DNA of 14,045 nt from Selaginella moellendorffii. Its lineage: Eukaryota > Plantae > Lycopodiophyta. The notes under the pieces are model-generated. The model worked only from the letters and a program-made list of their open reading frames with translations. It was not told the origin of the DNA and did no database searches. Where the stretch lies: positions 1 to 14,045 of the forward strand of contig NW_003314547.1 of assembly GCF_000143415.4 (NCBI RefSeq). Direction: 5' to 3'. Below, piece by piece: positions 1 to 14,045 of this stretch; positions within the stretch are counted from its first letter, which is position 1, and every line of letters begins with the position of its first letter. The position numbers and the translations under genes were made by a program.

Positions 1-1723
1 GTTTCTTCTCCTTGCTCAGCATTGAATGGATCTCCATCCCGAAGCGTAGAGCTCTCTCCCTCTTCTCACTGGATTCGGTAGCAAGTGTGGAGCAGGCGCT
101 GATCACCGCGACATGGGTCCGATCGTTAGGTTGAATGGTGGTACAAGCTCTCAGGGCAGAGTAGTACTCCAGAGCAACTTCAGCTTGCCCGTTCGAGCCG
201 CAGCCCTGGATGATCGCGTTGTAGGACACAACACTCCGGGTTCCCATGGAGTCGAAAATCTTGCGAGCCTCCTCAAGCTCGCCACACTTGCAGTACATGT
301 CTACCAGGCAATTCGCCACGAACAGATCTACCTGTTTCTTCTTGCTCAGCATTGAATGGATCTCCATCCCGATGCATAGAGCTCTCTCCCTCTTCTCGCT
401 GGATTCGGTAGCAAGTGTGGAGCAGGCGCTGATCACCGCGACATGTGTCCGATCGTCGGGTTGAATGGTGTTATCAGCTCTCAGGGCAAAGTAGTACTCC
501 AGAGCAACTTCAGCTTGCCCGTTCGAGCCGCAGCCCTGGATGATCGCGTTGTAGGACACAACACTCTGAGTTCCCATGGAGTGGAAAATCTTGCGAGCCT
601 CCTCAAGCTCACCACACTTGCAGTACATGTCTACCAGGCAATTCGCCACGAACAGATCTAGCTGTTTCTTCTCCTTGCTCAGCATTGAATGGATCTCCAT
701 CCCGATGCGTAGAGCTCTCTCCCTCTTCTCGCTGGATTCGGTAGCAAGTGTGGAGCAGGCGCTGATCACCGCGACATGAGTCCGATCGTTGGGTTGAATG
801 GTGGTACAAGCTCTCAGGGCAGAGTAGTACTCCAGAGCAAGTTCAGCTCGCCCGTTCGTGTTGCACCCCTGGATGATCGCGGTGTAGGACACAACACTCC
901 GAGTTCCCATGGAGTGGAAAATCTTGCGAGCCTCCTCAAGCTCGCCACACTTGGAGTACATGTCTACCAGGCAAGTCGCCACGAACAGATCTAGCTGTTT
1001 CTTCTCCTTGCTCAGCATTGAATGGATCTCCATCCCAATGCGTAGAGCCCTCTCCCTCTTCTCGCTGGATTCGGTAGCAAGTCTGGAGCAGGCGCTGATC
1101 ACCGCGACATGTGTCCGATCGTTGGGTTGAATGGTGGTACAAGCTCTCAGGGCAGAGTAGTACTCCAGAGCAACTTCAGCTTGCCCGTTCGAGCCGCAGC
1201 CCTGGATGATCGCGTTGTAGGACACAACACTCCGAGTTCTCATGGAGTCGAAAATCTTGCGAGCCTCCTCAAGCTCGCCACACTTGGAGTACATGTCTAC
1301 CAGGCAAGTCGCCACGAACAGATCTACCTGTTTCTTCTCCTTGCTCAGCATTGAATGGATCTCCATCCCGATGCGTAGAGCTCTCTCCCTCTTCTCGCTG
1401 GATTCGGTAGCAAGTCTGGAGCAGGCGCTGATCACCGCGACATGTGTCCGATCGTTGGGTTGAATGGTGGTACAAGCTCTCAGGGCAGAGTAGTACTCCA
1501 GAGCAACTTCAGCTTGCCCGTTCGAGCCGCAGCCCTGGATGATCGCGTTGTAGAACGCNNNNNNNNNNNNNNNNNNNNNNNNNNNNNNNNNNNNNNNNNN
1601 NNNNNNNNNNNNNNNNNNNNNNNNNNNNNNNNNNNNNNNNNNNNNNNNNNNNNNNNNNCTCCGGGTTCCCATGGAGTCGAAAATCTTGCGAGCCTCCTCA
1701 AGCTCGCCACACTTGCAGTACAT
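1..1723. repeat. Coding tandem repeat, 333-bp unit (one unit 330 bp), about 4.7 units before the gap plus a partial unit after it
   Basis: Equivalent positions recur at 113, 443, 776, 1109 and 1442 (offsets 330, 333, 333, 333). Units are roughly 94-98% identical by eye count. The only indel is an in-frame 3-bp loss near 340 (SKEKKQ to SKKKQ). Confidence 0.97.
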
Positions 1724-2095
1724 ATCGATCAATCCCGTCAACAAGTAGATGTTGCTTTTGTGCTCATCACTCTTGAGCACAGCTTCATGGGCTTGTTTTC
1801 CCAAAGAAAGGGATCTGCTCTCAGCTGAGTCTCTCACGCGGTGTATCAGCCTCCCTAAACTCACCGGTTCATCACCAGCTACAGGTGGGGTATGTGGAGA
1901 TTTGTAGCGGACCGCCTTACCTACAGCTGGGTCAGCGAGCGACTCGAGTTTTGCAGAGACCCAGGTTTTCCTGTTGGCGATGCACAGGCTCTCTCCAGTA
2001 GAAACATGTTTGAAATCCGGGTAGGACTCTGAGAAGAACTTGTTTTTCTTCTTGAACCTGTTGTCCCACCAGAAAGTGGGATCCCTGAACTCCAT
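2..2095 (-). CDS. PLS-class pentatricopeptide repeat protein, 3'-incomplete (C-terminus lies left of the window); candidate organellar RNA-editing/RNA-binding factor
   Basis: Hand translation from ATG 2095 gives MEFRDPTFWWDNRFKKKNKF...SLSLGKQAHEAVLKSDEHKSN-IYLLTGLIDMYCKCGELEEARKIFDSMGTRS, then the gap, then repeating P (VVSYNAIIQGCGSNGQAEVALEYYSALRACTTIQPN, 36 aa), L (DRTHVAVISACSTLATESSEKRERALRIGMEIHSMLSKEKKQVD, 44 aa) and S (LFVANCLVDMYCKCGELEEARKIFDSMGTRS, 31 aa) motifs. No stop in any called base from 2095 to 2, and the frame is the same on both sides of the 100-N gap. LxDMYxKCG..EEARK.FD.M / VVS.NA.I.G are hallmark S/P motifs. The start codon is less certain than the family call. Confidence 0.95.
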   Translation of the reverse strand, partial: MEFRDPTFWWDNRFKKKNKFFSESYPDFKHVSTGESLCIANRKTWVSAKLESLADPAVGKAVRYKSPHTPPVAGDEPVSLGRLIHRVRDSAESRSLSLGKQAHEAVLKSDEHKSNIYLLTGLIDMYCKCGELEEARKIFDSMGTRXXXXXXXXXXXXXXXXXXXXXXXXXXXXXXXXXXAFYNAIIQGCGSNGQAEVALEYYSALRACTTIQPNDRTHVAVISACSRLATESSEKRERALRIGMEIHSMLSKEKKQVDLFVATCLVDMYSKCGELEEARKIFDSMRTRSVVSYNAIIQGCGSNGQAEVALEYYSALRACTTIQPNDRTHVAVISACSRLATESSEKRERALRIGMEIHSMLSKEKKQLDLFVATCLVDMYSKCGELEEARKIFHSMGTRSVVSYTAIIQGCNTNGRAELALEYYSALRACTTIQPNDRTHVAVISACSTLATESSEKRERALRIGMEIHSMLSKEKKQLDLFVANCLVDMYCKCGELEEARKIFHSMGTQSVVSYNAIIQGCGSNGQAEVALEYYFALRADNTIQPDDRTHVAVISACSTLATESSEKRERALCIGMEIHSMLSKKKQVDLFVANCLVDMYCKCGELEEARKIFDSMGTRSVVSYNAIIQGCGSNGQAEVALEYYSALRACTTIQPNDRTHVAVISACSTLATESSEKRERALRFGMEIHSMLSKEKK
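1559..1658. other. Assembly gap (100 N) inside the PPR array
   Basis: Run of N. The flanks are only 4 nt apart in repeat-unit register. Confidence 0.99.
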
Positions 2096-2127
2096 GAGAT
2101 TGTTGAGAAATGACACACACACCACAC

Positions 2128-2136
2128 AAACCCTAG
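2128..2136 (+). promoter_or_regulatory. Telo-box-like motif (AAACCCTAG) just upstream of the PPR ATG
   Basis: aaaccctag lies 33-41 nt upstream of ATG 2095. AAACCCTA is a known plant promoter/5'UTR element, but the motif is short and could occur by chance. Confidence 0.35.
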
Positions 2137-2150
2137 CGCCGCACGCATAC

Positions 2151-2527
2151 CCTAGAAATCCCGATTTGTTATTACTTAACTGTAGTAGTAAAAAGCTCGT
2201 GTTTTCTGTTTTTTCTTTTTCCAATTCTTTTCCTTTTTAAACTTTACAATGTCACAGCTTAACTGCAGCAGCTTAGATGTTTATTGTTAAAAAAAAATCT
2301 CTTTGATATATATAGAAAGTGAGCCAGAAGCAATCAGTTGCTCAAGAGCTGAAGAATCAGTACATGCATAATTTTCAGACAATCTTCTAACTGGCTGAAC
2401 TGATATCAGGATTTTATGATTATTATTATTATTACTAACAACACGCACGAACTTCCTAGAAATCCCGATTTGTTATTCTCTGCATTCATTTTTTATATGA
2501 TCTGTTGCTGCATGCACTTAACTGTAG
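2151..2527. repeat. Dispersed direct repeat upstream of the PPR gene
   Basis: cctagaaatcccgatttgttatt (23 bp) is exact at 2151-2173 and 2455-2477. Each copy is preceded by cacgca and followed by acttaactgtag (2174-2185 and 2516-2527). Confidence 0.85.
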
Positions 2528-3319
2528 GTAGTCTGAATTCAGTTCTTCAATATAATCTGCTAACTAAAAGATATCGATACACTCAATATGCAAAAATAAA
2601 CCACACTCTACACAAATTAAATAAAAAATGCTCTTCATGGGGCCAGAAGCCTCAGGGCACCAGTTTCATGCAGAACACTTTCGCAAATGACTCTCGCCGG
2701 GGGCCCATGCGGTGGTAAAACCTCACAAGGCCTCACGTACTTATATTCACCCTTCTGGCTGCTCTGCAACATACCTTACCACACCAAACTCTTCGCACAT
2801 GAAGCCACACACGGAGGAAAAAACCAGCGAGGCCTCACGTGCTTACAGTCAGTCCTTATATGTGTTCTTGGCCTCGCTCAGTTCATCTCCTTTGTTGTCC
2901 ACCTGCGCTTCTTTACTTCATGTTTTTGCTTGCATGCTTCGATTGACATCTTCAGATTTTCAAGTGAACAATTGTGGCATACCGTGGCTACGTTTTTTGG
3001 CAGAGCTTGGAGGTGCTGAAAGTGGCATTAAGTTCGTGGAGGATTGATCTTGATTTGGATTGTATGGATCTCTATAAATTTTGAAACTTGAGTTTATTTT
3101 TCTTCTTTTTCTTCTGTGTTGCCAAAATAACTGGTGTCAAACTTGCTTTTTCAGACTATCTCTAGTACTTCTGGATGCGATCAAGGCCTGCTGCTCATTG
3201 CTTCAAAGGAGGAGATGATAATTGATCCCTAAAGAGCGAGCTTGATGGTTTTGTTGCTTTCATCAAGTTATCATTCCGCTGCAATCTGAAACACCACATC
3301 GTCCACTGTACTTTCACAG

Positions 3320-3788
3320 GTTTCGAGACAGGTACCCGGAAAAGGTGTATTCCATTGTTGTTCCTCAGGACCTGGACTTGTTTTGCCGCCTCAAGTGTGA
3401 GCTGATCAAGATGAGGGAGAAGCTTGCGATGGTGGAGGCTTGGGCTCGAGCAAGGTTGCAGATGCAGTATGAGGATGATTTCTTCTACAACTATGATGAG
3501 TGGGACAGCTTTGTGGATCTTTCCACATTGAGATCGTTGAGCAGAGAGTGTTGTAGCATAAGTTGTCTCCTGGAGAAATGGTCCTGGCTCAAGGAGCAGT
3601 TTGCACGCATCCACACGTCAAGATTGTTGGAGAGCTCAACTAGAAGATGGAAAAAGGCCAAGGTGACTCATGGGGTTTCAAAACCTGCACTCGGCTTGGT
3701 AAGGTTTGGTGAGTTAAATAAGTATGATGAGTTTGAAGAGACAATCGCAAAAAAAAAAAGGGGGACGTCTAGACGTGAAGCGTGCTAG
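3320..3788 (+). pseudogene. Hypothetical exon-like or degenerate coding segment, unknown product
   Basis: 147-aa ORF with protein-like composition, open in frame from an acceptor-like ctttcacAG at ~3319. It ends shortly after an A-run/G-run that may be a frameshift. No recognisable domain. Confidence 0.25.
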
Positions 3789-4250
3789 CTCTCCTGAATG
3801 GCTTCAAAGAGGTGAGGTGTCTTAAAGAGGAGATGATAGAGCTGAGCATGGAGCTGAACTTGGCTTGTGCTCCTTGTAAGAGCTAACTAGCTAGCAAAAA
3901 CAGAGGAGACGGTGAAGAGGATGCCTCTTGAACTCCAAGAGAACAACAGACCTTTTTTTTAAGGAGGGGAGAAGCTGCTAGCAGCTCAGAAGTATGAGCA
4001 GTGCAGCCTGTGCACCAAGACTGCTGGGTGGTTCGGGGCTTGGTTAAAGTAGGCAACCGGGTGGAGGCAGGGGGTTGGGAGCAATCCAAGGCTTGAGGTA
4101 TGACTTGTCTTTTCTACCTGGTGGAACTCCATCCGAGCATTCCTACTTCATTTCATAATAACTCTCATTTTCACTCTAATTAATTCCTTTTTTTCCTTCC
4201 TCTAACTTAAATCTGTTCACACACAATATTGAGCTAACCACTTCACAATT

Positions 4251-4262
4251 GCTCCGATACCA
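4251..4262 (-). other. Primer-binding-site-like motif (initiator tRNA-Met)
   Basis: The reverse complement is TGGTATCGGAGC, one mismatch from the common plant PBS TGGTATCAGAGC. It is preceded on the minus strand by gtgctaTA-tt, possibly a decayed LTR end (..CA). Confidence 0.45.
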
Positions 4263-4349
4263 AATATAGCACATTTGAATTTGGAGTTGAACTCCAAGCC
4301 CGTTGCGCTACGAAATGAGGGTTCGATACAATCCCACAAGTAGCAACTT

Positions 4350-5096
4350 ATGAAACCTACTCCTAGCAGAATGAGTAGTGTGGGTCATTGCTTCCATTAT
4401 AAAGAGTCAGGACATAGATCCTTGAAATGTCCCAACAAGCATAAGACAAGGTTTCATGTTAATGTCATGAGGGAAGACGGTGATGGTGAAGCTGAAGGGG
4501 TTGACGAGTTGGTTAATGTAGATTACAAGGAAGAGGAGGTGAGTTACTTTCGTTGCTTTCCTCAAGCTTTTCTCGCAGCCAATGCAAACACTAATCCGTT
4601 GATATATCTAGTAGGCTTTGTCTGTGGACACTGAATCCGAGTGATGATTGACACAAAAGCTATGCATAGCATGATATCTGAAGACTTAGTTAAGTTGTTA
4701 AGATTGAATGCTGAGCAAATGTCACATATGCACTTCCGGTTTGCATAAGGTGGACAAGTAGCCAAAAAGTTTGTGAGTGATGTTCAAATAAAAATATCCA
4801 AGTGGAAAGAAAGAGTGAACTTGGTAGTGTTGAAGATACCAGATTTTTAAATGGTGTTTGGTATTGATTTCTTCAACAAGTATATAAAAGGGATTTATGG
4901 TGCTGGACAAAGTTGGATCACATTGAAGTCAGAAGGACATCCCAATGTGTCCTTCCAATTGCAAAAGTGCTCTTCAAAGGATTGGGATGCCAAGTTTCTG
5001 ATTACGAGAGCCACTCAAAAAGCAGCTAAGAAGGGATGTCAAACCTTTTGGGTTCAAGTGATGGAAGCTGAAAGTGTTGGTGACTCAGTTCGAATC
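4350..5096 (+). pseudogene. Gag zinc knuckle and aspartic protease remnant
   Basis: One frame with in-frame stops: CFHYKESGHRSLKCP (CCHC with C to Y, 4389-4430), VMIDTKAMHSMIS (decayed D-T-G-A-T-H-S motif) and MVFGIDF (ILG.D flap-like). Confidence 0.88.
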
Positions 5097-6227: not shown

Positions 6228-8585
6228 GGTGACGGTGTTAATCCTATACCAAAGAAGATATTGGAGTTGTTGGCGAGGAATCAGGATATCTTCCCAAAGG
6301 ATTTACCACCAGGGCTACCTTCTAGCCGTGAGGCTGATCATCAAATAAGGTTATTCCGGGTTCTAAACCACCTACAAAAGCTCTATATCGATTAAACATC
6401 AAGGAGATGGCTAAACTCAAGAAGCAACTCATGGAGCTTCTTGACAAAGGTCATATCCGACCAAGCAAGTCACCTTATTCTCAATGGCTCGTATTCCACT
6501 ATATCAGATGTTCGTTCCTTTCTCGGTTTGGCAAGATACTATTGCAAGAATTGCTCTTCCGTTGACTGAGTTGATAAAGAGTAGTATTCTGTTTCATTGG
6601 ACACCAACTTGTCAGCGTGCTTGAAGGAGATCTTGATGACAGTTCCTATTCTCCAGATCCCAAATCTTGATAAACCCTTCAAAGTGCATTGTGATGCATC
6701 TGGCTATGCTATTGGTGCCGTGTTGCAACAAGATTATGACAAAGCGGTTGGTGTTATGCTAAGGCGACATGGTTGTCCTATTGCGTTCTATTCCAAGAAA
6801 TTGGATAAAACTCAACGAAGATGGCCAACGCACAAGAAAGAGATGTTTGCTATAGTGTCGGCCTTAGAACACTGGAGACACTGTTTGGGTGGACATACCA
6901 AGGTTTATACAAATAATAACACACTAAGCTACTTTGCTACGCAGCCAAAACTTATGCCGAAGTAGATTCGTTGGCAAGAGAAGCTTGCTAGATATGATAT
7001 TGAAATCATATATAAACCTGGTAAAGACAATATTGTTCTGGATGCATTGAGTCGTCAGGCTCAATTCCGGGAAATATCAGCAATCAGTTCAGATTGGTTG
7101 GAGGATGTTCAGGTTTTGTATGGAAGTGATCCATTAGCGAAGGCAATCTTGCACCGTGCGGAGTTGGTGAAGTAGAAACCTGGTAGTGAAGTGGCAAAAG
7201 TTGCTAGTTGCACCAATGCAAAGCTTCACTTCTTAGTTCAGGATGAGCTTATATTCTGTAAGCAAGAAAGATTGTATCTTCTCTCTAAGGATTTGCAGCA
7301 GTTGTTTCTGTGGGAACATCATGATGTTCCGACAATAGGACATGGTGGAAAACGGAAGACTTTGGCTTCATTGAAAAAGGGATTTTTCTAGTCTGGTATG
7401 GAAGGTGATGTAGCGGACTATGTCCGTTCTTGCCCTATATGCCAGAAATGTAAGCACAAAACTAAGAAGCAGGCTGGAAAGTTGCAGTGCATTCTAGCAC
7501 CGACATAGCCATTTCAAAGTGTGACACTTGATTTTGTCACTTGTTTGCCGAAATCTGAGGGTTATGATACTTTGATGGTGGTTATGGATCGGTTGTCAAA
7601 GATTGCACACTTCATTCCAACTGTGGGAATAGTGAATGTGAAACAAGCAGCAAAGCTCTTTTTCCATGAAGTAGTTCGGGTTTGTGGTCTTCCCGAAGAG
7701 ATGATCTCAAATAGAGATTCGAGATTTACAGGGAAGTTTTGGGGCACACTATTCCAGTTGTTCGGTACCAAGTTGAAGTTTAGTACAGCTTATCATCCTC
7801 AAACCAATGGGCAGACCGAATGCATGAATGCTCAAGTAGAGGATTATCTGCAGTACTATGTCATGGCAGACAAACACCATTGGGTTGAGCATTTAGACAT
7901 AGCAAAAATTTGTTATAACAACACATTTCACAGCACTATTGGCTGTTCTTCATAGGAGATATTGCAAGGGAATGCTTGTGGGGTGCCTCAACAGATAGTT
8001 GTACCAAAACCATTGTCCAAAGTGTTGGTCCTGGCTGTTGAGACTTATGCAGAGTAGCTACACCAAGATTGGTCTAGAGCTACTGAGGCAATGGGCAAAG
8101 CTTAGAATAGGTATTGACGTGATAAGGATCTGCATCGTCAAGATGTATCCTATTAAGTGGGAGATCAGGAGTGGCTATCTTCCCGGAACTTGAACATTAA
8201 GGGATCTTTGTCTCGGAAGCTGTTACCGAGATATGTTAGACCCTATCAGGTGTTAAAACACATTGGTGATGTATCCTATAAGTTAGATTTTCCGAATGAG
8301 TTATCCTAGCTACATAATATGTTTCATGTCAATTTACTGGCACCATATCATGCTGCTGTGGAACGCTCTACGGACATGCGTCTTCCACCAGTGATCATGG
8401 ATGGTGAACCTGAGTATGAAGCTGAGTCTATCTTAGATTCTCGGTTTCGGAGATGGGCTCGTGCGAAGGAATACCTAGTTAAGTGGAAAGGTTACCCGAC
8501 TTGTGAATCAACTTGGGAACCTCTTAGGAATCTTACATATGCTCATGAGCTTGTCACGGAGTATGAGAATCGTAATAAAGATTAG
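6228..8585 (+). pseudogene. Chromovirus pol remnant: partial RT, RNase H, integrase, chromodomain
   Basis: DIFPKDLPPGLP..DHQI, LLDKGHIRPSKSPYS, VRSFLGLARYY, RNase H (HCDASGYAIGAVLQQ, PIAFYSKKL, EMFAIVSALEHWRH), integrase (HDVPTIGHGG..CPICQKC, TLDFVTCLP, MISNRDSRF, STAYHPQTNGQTE) and chromodomain EYEAESILDSR..EYLVKWKGYPTCESTWEP from 8412. Confidence 0.93.
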
Positions 8586-9143: not shown

Positions 9144-9404
9144 NNNNNNNNNNNNNNNNNNNNNNNNNNNNNNNNNNNNNNNNNNNNNNNNNNNNNNNNN
9201 NNNNNNNNNNNNNNNNNNNNNNNNNNNNNNNNNNNNNNNNNNNNNNNNNNNNNNNNNNNNNNNNNNNNNNNNNNNNNNNNNNNNNNNNNNNNNNNNNNNN
9301 NNNNNNNNNNNNNNNNNNNNNNNNNNNNNNNNNNNNNNNNNNNNNNNNNNNNNNNNNNNNNNNNNNNNNNNNNNNNNNNNNNNNNNNNNNNNNNNNNNNN
9401 NNNN
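9144..9404. other. Assembly gap (261 N)
   Basis: Run of N. Confidence 0.99.
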
Positions 9405-11569: not shown

Positions 11570-14045
11570 AAGTTGTTCTAGTATGGTTGGTCTTCTTTTG
11601 ATTGATTCTTCTTAGTTGATTTTGTATTGTATTGCCATTCGTAATGATGAAACGATGTACTTAAGTGGTGTCAAAGCTTCAAGGCTATAGGTGAGCTTGA
11701 ATGGTGTCGAATTTGTTGAAACCTTATATGTGGTTCAATATGCCTACAAAGCATCATAAATGTGATCGTCCTAGTCTTTCTGATTTATTTTCACAATTTT
11801 CATGAGGATATTTTTGAGTGTCTTGTTTGTAGACTCTGCTTGACCATTGCCTTGAGGGCAGTATAGTGTTGAACCCCTGTGTTTGGATAGTGAATTCTTG
11901 AGTCAAGATTTTGATGGTTTCATTGATGAAGTGTGTTCCTTGATCAATGATGAGTTCTCAAAGTAAACCATATCTTGTGATGATGTTTTTGTAGATGAAC
12001 TGTGTTATGTTCTTTGTGTTGAACTTCAGCCCATTTTATCATATAGTCTATTGCAATTAGAATGTGCTAGTTTTGCTTGGAGCTTGTCATAAGTGGACCA
12101 ACAAAGTCGAGTCCCCATCATTGAAAAGGTTCGAGTGGAGTTTTTGGATGAAGTTCTTGAGTTTAATTTTTTGGTGTATACTTGGTTCATTGGTAAATAT
12201 CACATTTTTGACAAAACTTGGCCAAAGTGTTGGCCACCAAAGTCTTGCTTGTAAAATTTTTTGAGTTGTGATTTCTCTAGCAAAGCGTCTTCCTATTTGT
12301 CCATAGTAGGCTTTTTCAAGTAGATCTTGTGTTTCTTCTAGGTTTGCACATCTTCGTAAAATGTTGTCTCTTCCTTGTTTGTACAGTTTTCTTCCCACGA
12401 CTGAATATGGTCTTGTCCTCAAGACAAATTGCTTACGTTTGTTAGAGGTTGAATGTTAACTTGGTATTGTTGCTGTTATAAGGTAATAATAGATGTTGTC
12501 CATCTAGGTTGGTGATGTGTGGATTTGAAGGATATTGGAGTCAGGAAAGTCATCCATGTTGTGTTTCGATTGTTCATCAATTGTAATGTGGCTTAGGTGT
12601 TCATGTTCTCTTCCAAGCTTGTAGATGATCTTGAAATTGTATTCTTGAAGTAGTAAGAACCATTGTGCAATTTTGTCAGTGAGGATTGTTTTGTTGAGAA
12701 GGTGAAGGAAGTTATAGAGTAGATAGTATCGAAACTTCTGGAGTGCGTAGATCATTGCTAGAGCTTCTTTTTCAGTTGTAATGTAATTCATTTTGGTTGA
12801 GTTGAGTCTTCAATTTGCATAGTAGATTGGTTGGTCTTTATGATCTTCTTGTTGTTGCAAAAGGATCGCTTTGAGGGCATAGTTGGAGTCATCGACTTGG
12901 ATGTTGAAGTCTTTGTTCTAGTTTTGTTGAGCTTGGGTGAGGGAATTCTTGAGGTTGATAAAGGCATTTTGACAATCTTGAGTCTAGTTGTAAACTTGAT
13001 TCTCCTTGAGGAGTTCAGTGATGGGTTTTGCAATTTTGGCGTAGTCTTTCATGAATCTTCGATGGTATCCCATCTTGCTGAGGAATGATTGAAGGCTTGA
13101 AATCTCGAATGGATGTTGTATGTTGATGACTGTGAGGGTCTTGTCTTTGTGGATGAGGATTCCTTCTTTAGAAACTACATGTCCAAGTAGAATTCCTAAT
13201 TTGACGAAGAAAATGCACTTGTCAAGGTTCAATGTAATATTGTGTAATATTGTCAAGGTTCATGGCATTTGATAAAGCATTTCTCTAAGCGTTAGAGATG
13301 ATCTTATTTTTTGCTAAAGACATTGAAGTCATCCATAAATACTCACATAAATTCAGTGAGGTATTCTCAAAAAGTGTCAGTGATAATCCATTGAAACATG
13401 AATGGTGCATTGGAGAGACTAAAAGGTATATGAAGGTAGGCATATGCTCCCCATGGATTGATGAAAGCCATCTTGTGTTGATCTTCAAACGCAATATGTA
13501 CTTGATTGTGTCTACTAAAGCCATTGAGAAAGGAGTACATCTCATATTCTACAACTGCATCAAGAATTTCATTAGAGAATAGAATTGAAAAGGTGTCCTT
13601 TTGAGTTGTATCGTTGAGCTTCTTATAGTTGATATAAATCCTAAGTTTATTGTTCTTCTTGGGGACAATGACTAGTGGTGATAGCCATTTTAGATTTTGA
13701 ATTGGGAAGATGAATTTAACATTTTTGAGTTTATCAAGCTCTTCCTTGACTTTGGTTTGTATGTTGGGATTCATTCGGTAGGCTGATTGCTTTGTTGGTA
13801 CTTCTTGTGATAGAAGCTCAATCTGTGTAGAGTTCAGGTGGAATTCCTCGTAAGTCAGTCTAAGACCAGGTGAAAACATCTTGATAAGTGTCAAGTAGTT
13901 GGGTTGCATTTGCTTTAAAATCTTCATCAAGCTCTTGGGCAATATGAAGTTTTTTTGGTTCTTCAAGTATTCCAAGGTTAATTTCTTGAGCTGGTTCTTC
14001 AAGGTTGAGTATAGGTGTAAGTCATGATCCTTCTTGTGTAGACTG
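11570..14045 (-). mobile_element. Degenerate non-chromovirus Ty3/gypsy pol (RT, RNase H, integrase), continuing beyond the right edge
   Basis: RT: KWLSPLVIVPKKNNKLRI, EMYSFLNGFSRHNQ, PFSLSNAPFMFQ, VFMDDF (~13325-13342), KCIFFVKLGILLGHVVS. RNase H: NYITTEKEALAMIYALQKFRYYL. Integrase: WGLDFVGPL, DQGTHFIN, PQGNGQAESTNKTL. The FMDD motif and overall style resemble Athila-related non-chromoviruses; clade not determined. Left boundary approximate. Confidence 0.9.

Follow-up and report, generated by a model that had tools for sequence, protein, structure and literature searches.

A young family of PLS-DYW editing-type PPR genes in the lycophyte Selaginella moellendorffii probably carries a tract of near-identical units that have been re-assorted by recombination, with differences that include the residues specifying RNA bases. 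One member lies on the minus strand of the window, the whole stretch of 14,045 nucleotides that was analysed. From its reading frame, its motif content and the identity of its N-terminus to annotated proteins, there is a fair case that this member represents the 5' portion of a nuclear PLS-type PPR gene that lacks introns and falls in the E-DYW organelle RNA-editing class. The repeat unit and the gene that contains it are described below, together with the paralogous loci, the variation among units and the explanations that this variation admits.

The repeat unit and the window gene

The array detected by TRF at positions 1-1553 of the window has a period of 333 bp, 4.7 copies, 95% matches and no indels. 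Each unit encodes 111 residues, consisting of an S motif of 31 aa (consensus L-F-V-A-[T/N]-C ... T-R-S), a P motif of 36 aa (V-V-S-Y-[N/T]-A ... I-Q-P-[N/D]) and a long L-like motif of 44 aa (D-R-T-H-V ... K-K-Q-[V/L]-D). The layout resembles that of the PLS class: the S and P motifs bear their typical signatures, and the third motif, with an L-like head, occupies the place of L but has extended helices and is 44 aa long rather than 35-36. Units across the family are 90-100% identical at the DNA level, with a mean of 94.6%.

Assignment of the tract to the PPR clan draws on profiles, fold and structural matches. On the tract of the window, Pfam returns PF13041 (E=5e-59) and PF01535 (E=1e-50). 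Three units modelled by AF2 from a single sequence fold entirely into helical hairpins (18 helices, pLDDT 86, pTM 0.76), with a first helix of 15 residues and a second helix of 21 residues in the L-like motif. The best PDB matches of the model are 9kfx, a synthetic PPR-DYW protein bound to RNA, and 5iww, a designer PLS protein, together with members of the dPPR series (5i9h, 6een). Each unit, as a set of three helical hairpins, would be expected to read three RNA bases.

The ORF of the window gene starts at the ATG at 2095-2093 (minus strand) and its translated frame is open to the window edge at position 1. The sole break is an assembly gap of 100 N, the length of which preserves the frame; because this gap sits within the array, the 4.7 copies are a lower bound. 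The C-terminus of the gene falls outside the window and the E-DYW end is seen in the paralogues only; by homology, the remainder beyond the edge would consist of more units followed by P-L-S-P2-L2-S2-E1-E2-DYW. The string W-W-D-N-R ... Y-P-D-F-K-H ... T-G-E-S-L in the N-terminal region is conserved among the paralogues and bears what we take to be a likeness to the OSB-type 'PDF' motif, a putative assignment. Pfam found no match in this PDF-like region and a search of the ESM Atlas with the N-terminus gave no useful match. Aligned with the paralogues, the window N-terminus proves to have lost 12, 6 and 6 nt in frame and to have C in place of one W. The features of the window are listed in Table 1.

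Table 1. Features of the window, with the fifth and last residues of each motif given as a pair
Feature	Position	Strand	Basis
N-terminal part of PLS-type PPR protein, ORF	2..2095	minus	translation; Pfam PPR families
N-terminal region with W-W-D-N-R...Y-P-D-F-K-H...T-G-E-S-L motif	1937..2095	minus	alignment with paralogues
First S motif, S0: I-Y-L-L-T... head, then repeat-type M-Y-C-K-C-G-E-L-E-E core; truncated by gap	1659..1750	minus	
100-N assembly gap within array	1559..1658	no strand	
Partial unit u0: P NN, L VD; first two codons adjoin the gap and are unreliable	1322..1558	minus	
Unit u1: S TS, P NN, L VD; codons S5 1307-1309, P5 1214-1216, P-last 1121-1123	989..1321	minus	
Unit u2: S TS, P TN, L VD; P5 codon 881-883, linked block T5/N12/T13/R16	656..988	minus	
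Unit u3: S NS, P ND, L VD; P-last codon 455-457, linked block D30/N31/D-last	326..655	minus	
Unit u4: S NS, P NN, L V?; truncated by window edge	2..325	minus	
Upstream flank, 91-94% identical to flanks of paralogous genes	2096..4149	no strand	blastn; alignment

The initial annotation of the window had pointed to unit-to-unit variation at the residues of the PPR recognition code. Its list of fifth/last pairs from N to C (P NN, S TS, P NN, S TS, P TN, S NS, P ND, S NS, P NN) was re-derived by minus-strand translation, which also confirmed V and D in every complete L motif of the window. The bases to which it traced the code changes are correct, namely 1308, 975, 642 and 312 (second codon bases of S5), 882 (P5) and 457 (P-last). 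Its count of about 21 variable positions among 111 needs slight adjustment: there are 20 amino-acid-variable columns, two of which adjoin the N gap, in addition to 7 synonymous-only columns and one in-frame deletion of 3 nt in the L tail of u3, which leaves that unit one codon shorter. Three of the four P/S code positions do vary in the window (hypergeometric p 0.013-0.018 among 18-20 variable columns), an enrichment that is suggestive only in a sample so small and chosen post hoc. Pairwise dN/dS among the window units ranges from 0.24 to 1.6. The code was applied correctly in predicting the address of the visible part, 5'-Y n R Y n R A n C U n C Y n-3', which is incomplete, interrupted by the gap and the window edge.

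Paralogous loci

The N-terminal 105 residues of the window gene are 90-94% identical to four annotated S. moellendorffii PPR-E-DYW proteins of 497-617 aa. The genomic loci of these proteins, labelled L001-L004 and taken from assembly GCA_000143415.2, contain the same 333-bp arrays. A single uninterrupted ORF is present in L001 (2003-5596, 1197 aa), L002 (6001-9090, 1029 aa) and L003 (6001-9705, 1234 aa), from which the public gene models splice parts of the arrays out as introns. All three ORFs end in an E motif and a full-length DYW_deaminase domain (PF14432, positions 1-92 of 93; E about 1e-28 to 1e-31). The plus-strand paralogue in L004 has an intact array and a disrupted DYW region. The same locus holds a fifth paralogue, which lies upstream of the fourth on the minus strand (214-4560). 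This is an ORF of 1449 aa that contains nine units, has its DYW end intact and is absent from the gene annotation.

The E-DYW C-terminus is present in the five paralogous loci that share the N-terminus and the arrays, and is disrupted in one of them; the terminal module of the complete paralogues carries H-x-E and the C-x-x-C-H zinc signature. The layout of the family consists of the N-terminal region, an L-like motif, S0, a series of near-identical units (P-L-S)n and the end P-L-S-P2-L2-S2-E1-E2-DYW. Judged by sequence, these genes most likely form a young gene family with six or more member loci, the window gene included. Upstream flanks of ~2 kb are 91-94% identical among the loci, showing that whole genes were duplicated together with their flanks. 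The assembly comprises two haplotypes, and the six loci may include haplotype pairs, in which case they would be less independent. The window itself was considered as the other haplotype of the L004 minus-strand gene and this was rejected, as the two flanks share only ~93% identity.

Searches of protein sequences with the tract (519 aa), word-indexed as well as exhaustive against 1.84 billion representatives, retrieved only PPR proteins of 26-40% identity, and a query with a single unit retrieved nothing. The tract searches lack a close match because the public models splice the arrays out; since these models remove the arrays or miss a gene altogether, database counts and lengths of Selaginella PPR proteins are biased as well. 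Metagenome contigs were also scanned for the exact pattern, and none matched.

Contigs of four public runs were matched to a reference unit (window 1052-1384) at a likeness of at least 85%. In one DNA run, 611 contig pieces align to this single unit, with no indel at 5% or more. The common differences are S5 T>N, P5 N>T with the linked columns 43, 44 and 47, and P-last N>D, as well as D>H at column 25, V>L at column 110 and several lesser changes, alongside a single synonymous site; the counts understate clustered variants, such as the D30/N31/D-last block, which is partly clipped as loose ends. The tandem junction, at which the alignment goes back by 333, was found with the main variants in four independent runs from four studies, including one under a second organism label. 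By k-mer depth the unit is high-copy, with roughly a hundred unit-equivalents or more, an order-of-magnitude figure uncalibrated for single-copy depth. Runs guessed to be RNA (6-32 Mb of contigs, several studies) contain 36-42% of the words of the tract, which suggests, subject to that guessed label, that a tract of the window type is transcribed.

Variation among units and its explanation

Forty units were aligned codon by codon, 34 of them from the five loci outside the window, with the divergent S0 head, the last L (which is not part of the repeat) and both codons next to the gap masked. If the code positions are special, as the initial annotation had proposed, they should remain more variable than other sites when more units are added, and in the 34 units from the other loci the enrichment persists (Table 2). 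The entropies of these 34 units give a Mann-Whitney p of 0.0025 for the P/S positions and 0.0003 for the P/L/S positions. Under a circular-shift null, which retains the clustering of variable columns, the observed summed entropy was reached in 2 of 110 shifts (P/S) and in 0 of 110 (P/L/S). S5 (T/N), P5 (N/T) and P-last (N/D) are dimorphic in the outside units at minor-allele fractions of 0.41-0.45; L-last varies among D, G and A, and S-last and L5 are nearly fixed.

Table 2. Entropy rank of the code positions among the 111 columns
Position	40 units	34 units outside the window
P5	5	8
P-last	6	7
S5	7	5
L-last	8	3
L5	33	28
S-last	42	44

Each unit is a mosaic drawn from about ten short cassettes, which are dimorphic and assort with near independence. 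A base-specifying residue lies in four of them: S5 T/N, P5 N/T, P-last N/D and L-last D/G. Columns 43, 44 and 47 (P12, P13 and P16) are in near-complete linkage with P5, and columns 61 and 62 (P30 and P31) are linked with P-last, whereas columns 99, 102 and 109 of the L tail follow L-last more loosely (r2 0.48-0.64). Further independent dimorphisms are found at columns 25 (S25), 80 (L13), 110, 69 (L2) and 2-3 (S2-3). Within cassettes other than that of L-last r2 is 0.76-1.0, and between cassettes it is about 0-0.25, even for columns 15-30 codons apart. A codon site test on a single tree is invalid here because the cassettes re-assort freely. In the AF2 model, the variable cassettes map to the opening turns of the first helices (positions 2-6), to the P inter-helix turn and to the motif-ending loops. 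Judging by PPR-RNA structures, all three would be RNA-side elements.

The proposed picture of a constant scaffold with variable specificity residues is therefore supported, with a reservation. The code positions are enriched, but the linked non-code residues vary just as much: S25, L13, P12, P13, P16, P30, P31 and the L tail are as variable as the code positions, and to say that only specificity residues vary is too strong. Equal variability of non-code columns in the same cassettes is what a neutral mosaic would produce. Under this explanation, which is the main rival but rather unlikely, the genes would be recently amplified and partly redundant or decaying PPR-DYW copies. The dimorphisms would be remnants of two or three founding triplets that gene conversion has shuffled. 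The code positions would vary as RNA-facing surface residues that tolerate change, with no selection for new specificities.

The residues at the code positions fit such drift poorly. At S5, P5 and P-last the 40 units contain canonical code residues only (T/N, N/T and N/D, respectively), so that every code change is a swap between such residues, as the initial annotation had noticed for the window units. P5 and P-last assort independently to give all four canonical P pairs in near-equal numbers (TD 12, NN 9, ND 9 and TN 9 in the 40-unit set), which drift from founders does not predict. In a current designer PPR kit, ND, NN, TN and TD address U, C, A and G, respectively (PMC12604669). The S pairs of the 40-unit set are TS (18), NS (14) and NT (1), the L pairs are VD (22), VG (8), LD (2) and VA (1), and all eight unit types defined by S5, P5 and P-last are present.

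Substitution rates bear on the neutral mosaic from both directions. The unit polymorphisms as a whole have a pN/pS of 0.54, indicative of working constraint, as are the value of 0.46 for the rarer variants and an omega of 0.09-0.43 (dS 0.012-0.036) across the C-terminal 378 codons of L001, L002 and L003. Variants with a minor fraction above 0.3 comprise 13 nonsynonymous and 2 synonymous changes, giving a per-site pN/pS of 1.9, compared with 0.46 among the other variants (Fisher p=0.046), and the common nonsynonymous variants, being linked in blocks, represent fewer independent events than these counts. So weak an excess would agree with neutrality, yet if the founders had diverged, many of the common differences would be expected to be synonymous, and only 2 synonymous ones lie above that fraction. 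Nonsynonymous differences between L001 and L003 fall on code codons in 4 of 33 cases, a modest excess that a neutral mosaic could accommodate. The same applies to the paralogue broken in its DYW region and to the N-terminal lesions of the window copy; three ORFs of more than 1000 aa and one of 1449 aa are nevertheless intact. Overall, the units are under purifying constraint. The pattern fits, at a borderline level, purifying selection on the scaffold combined with amino-acid dimorphisms at intermediate frequency, and positive selection at the code positions is suggested only.

The arrays themselves are changeable in length and order. The five paralogous loci have 5, 6, 7, 7 and 9 units, and all length changes are in-frame. 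In the L004 minus-strand gene, three units are duplicated exactly over 999 nt (3546-2548 and 2547-1549, 0 differences). The identity of units is about equal within a gene (94.9%) and between genes (94.5%). L001 and L002 differ by 4 nt in the C-terminal part, yet have 7 and 5 units, respectively, with different code strings. Unequal crossing-over in register, together with the exchange of short tracts among units, would account for such changes. The deaminase ends of the paralogues differ by only 0.4-3%; proteins with ends 97-99.6% identical would in this way come to carry different numbers and orders of units and, with them, different predicted RNA addresses.

Under the preferred explanation of a recombining PLS-DYW family, we infer that base recognition by each motif follows the code and that the proteins act as editors of organelle RNA; selection for new or multiple targets would maintain the dimorphisms. 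The fullest form of this explanation, that the family is a natural set of self-reprogramming editing factors in which a pool of triplets with balanced code dimorphisms is shuffled into new addresses on an unchanged deaminase, is put forward tentatively, as a possibility.

The organelles of S. moellendorffii contain thousands of editing sites. This hyper-edited transcriptome, in a species credited with 3,861 PPR genes in a kingdom-wide PPR paper, leaves some room for expressed proteins that act as a broad-specificity editor or RNA chaperone on periodic or low-complexity RNA, or on many loosely related sites. The predicted addresses are indeed periodic in three bases, with the L position unread and S reading two states only. 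This alternative is nonetheless improbable. High specificity is in principle open to arrays of 15-27 repeat-unit motifs in which all four P pairs are represented. It is scarcely credible that the array is a mis-assembled or collapsed repeat or a PPR-derived satellite varying through sequencing or assembly error: the 100-N gap, the high copy number and an Arg at unit column 28 (codon 1238-1240) that is private to u1 and missing from the contigs of the four public runs would agree with this, but the arrays of the five other loci are gap-free within complete ORFs, the four independent runs share the major variants and the tandem junction, and length changes are in-frame only.

Comparison with known systems

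PPR editing factors are thought to acquire targets slowly, via point changes in diverged motifs. The recombining family suggests a faster route to new targets in a hyper-editing plant, namely recombination among near-identical units that differ at code residues. If this is true, the family would be a generator of new editing specificities, which would help to explain hyper-editing, and a ready-made natural scaffold for designer editors of the PLS type. No description of near-identical PLS triplets in natural PLS-DYW proteins or in a lycophyte was found in the literature searched, the coverage of which is incomplete, so that a prior description is possible.

The closest known systems are the PLS-class PPR-E-DYW factors, including moss PPR56 and PPR65 and the large DYW family of Selaginella. 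They share the fifth/last code, an intronless nuclear gene and, allowing for the L-like third motif, the alternation of P, L and S, and the complete paralogues likewise end in P2-L2-S2-E1-E2-DYW with the zinc signature. In contrast, the motifs of ordinary PPR-E-DYW proteins are ~30-40% identical to one another, whereas the triplets of the Selaginella family are 90-100% identical. The 44-aa L-like motif with its 21-residue second helix and the N-terminal PDF-like motif are further departures from the ordinary type.

A similar mode of evolution is known from the RFL genes of angiosperms, P-class PPR genes with high diversity at motif positions 5 and 35 that has been read as diversifying selection, and with gain and loss of motifs by recombination (PMC5075784). 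RFL proteins lack a deaminase, take part in the cytoplasmic male sterility conflict of flowering plants and have motifs that are conserved but not near-identical. The window family was rejected as RFL-type on account of its PLS layout, the DYW domain of the paralogues and its lycophyte host; the evolutionary mode alone is alike. The TAL effectors of Xanthomonas offer an analogy, with near-identical tandem repeats, a two-residue specificity determinant and recombination of repeats. They are of unrelated fold and origin, bind DNA and have a repeat of 33-35 aa with specificity residues 12/13. The window gene was rejected as a TAL effector, as it is a plant nuclear gene for which Pfam gives only families of the PPR/TPR type.

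A further parallel is to designer PPR proteins (dPPR, cPPR, (PLS)3PPR, dsnS/GRASP and synthetic PPR-DYW), in which a scaffold is repeated and few residues are swapped, chiefly the fifth and last. The Selaginella family offers a natural system in which the PPR code of P, L and S motifs could be probed against a single constant background, and the residues that co-vary with the code (P12, P13 and P16 with P5; P30 and P31 with P-last) are candidate context effects for synthetic PPR design. Designer PPRs are man-made, whereas the near-identity of the Selaginella units is natural and comes with further residues that co-vary with the code residues.

Reading frames and gene models of the paralogues

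The L004 locus of S. moellendorffii carries two paralogues of the window's PPR gene arranged head to head. The minus-strand copy is an intact open reading frame for which the record holds no gene call, and its DYW (deaminase) domain terminates in D-K-Y-F. Within its array, three of the 333-bp units are doubled exactly over 999 nt (L004:1549-3546), such that u2-u4 and u5-u7 display 0 nt differences; either the units crossed over unequally at a very recent date, or the doubling was introduced in assembly. The plus-strand copy, which is annotated, has a reading frame disrupted within the DYW region, and the public model P0268 spans this break by splicing. The broken stretch itself looks as though a short segment had been inverted there.

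The public models of three further PPR-E-DYW proteins (P0266, P0267, and P0269) comprise only 497-617 aa, with portions of the array called introns. In contrast, the DNA at each of L001, L002, and L003 harbors a single uninterrupted reading frame of 1029-1234 aa.

Features of the window and of the paralogous loci
Feature	Location	Strand	Remarks
Intact ORF	L004:214-4560	-	1449 aa; nine units and DYW end
Paralogue behind P0268	L004:6001-10150	+	array intact
ORF	L001:2003-5596
ORF	L002:6001-9090
ORF	L003:6001-9705
N-terminal string	window 1937-2095	-	W-W-D-N-R-F-K-K-K ... Y-P-D-F-K-H ... T-G-E-S-L-W
(TG)n run	window 2108-2118; L002:~6030; L003		immediately upstream of start; columns 175-190 of A1 (N-terminal/upstream alignment)
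LTR retrotransposon fragment	window 6597-6962	+
LTR retrotransposon fragment	window 8319-8582	+
LTR retrotransposon fragment	window 12507-12791	-
Second assembly gap	window 9144-9404

Start region, N-terminus, and a private residue

The length of the (TG)n run differs by 2 nt among the paralogues and thereby sets the frame of an upstream ATG (M-R-A-A-L-G...), which matches that of the gene in L002 but is out of frame in the window and L003. The N-terminal string, also present in the corresponding region of L002-L004, looks like the OSB-type PDF motif; in the window copy, a conserved W is replaced by C. The Arg at column 28 of unit u1 (window 1238-1240) is private to this copy and is either a rare variant or a reference error, since all contigs of four runs encode Gly in this column.

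Retrotransposon remains

The frames of the window's LTR retrotransposon fragments are split into many short ORFs. RT-associated RNase H domains (E=5e-27 and 1e-06) lie on both strands and are accompanied by a chromodomain (E=2e-14), a combination consistent with a chromovirus-type Ty3/gypsy element.
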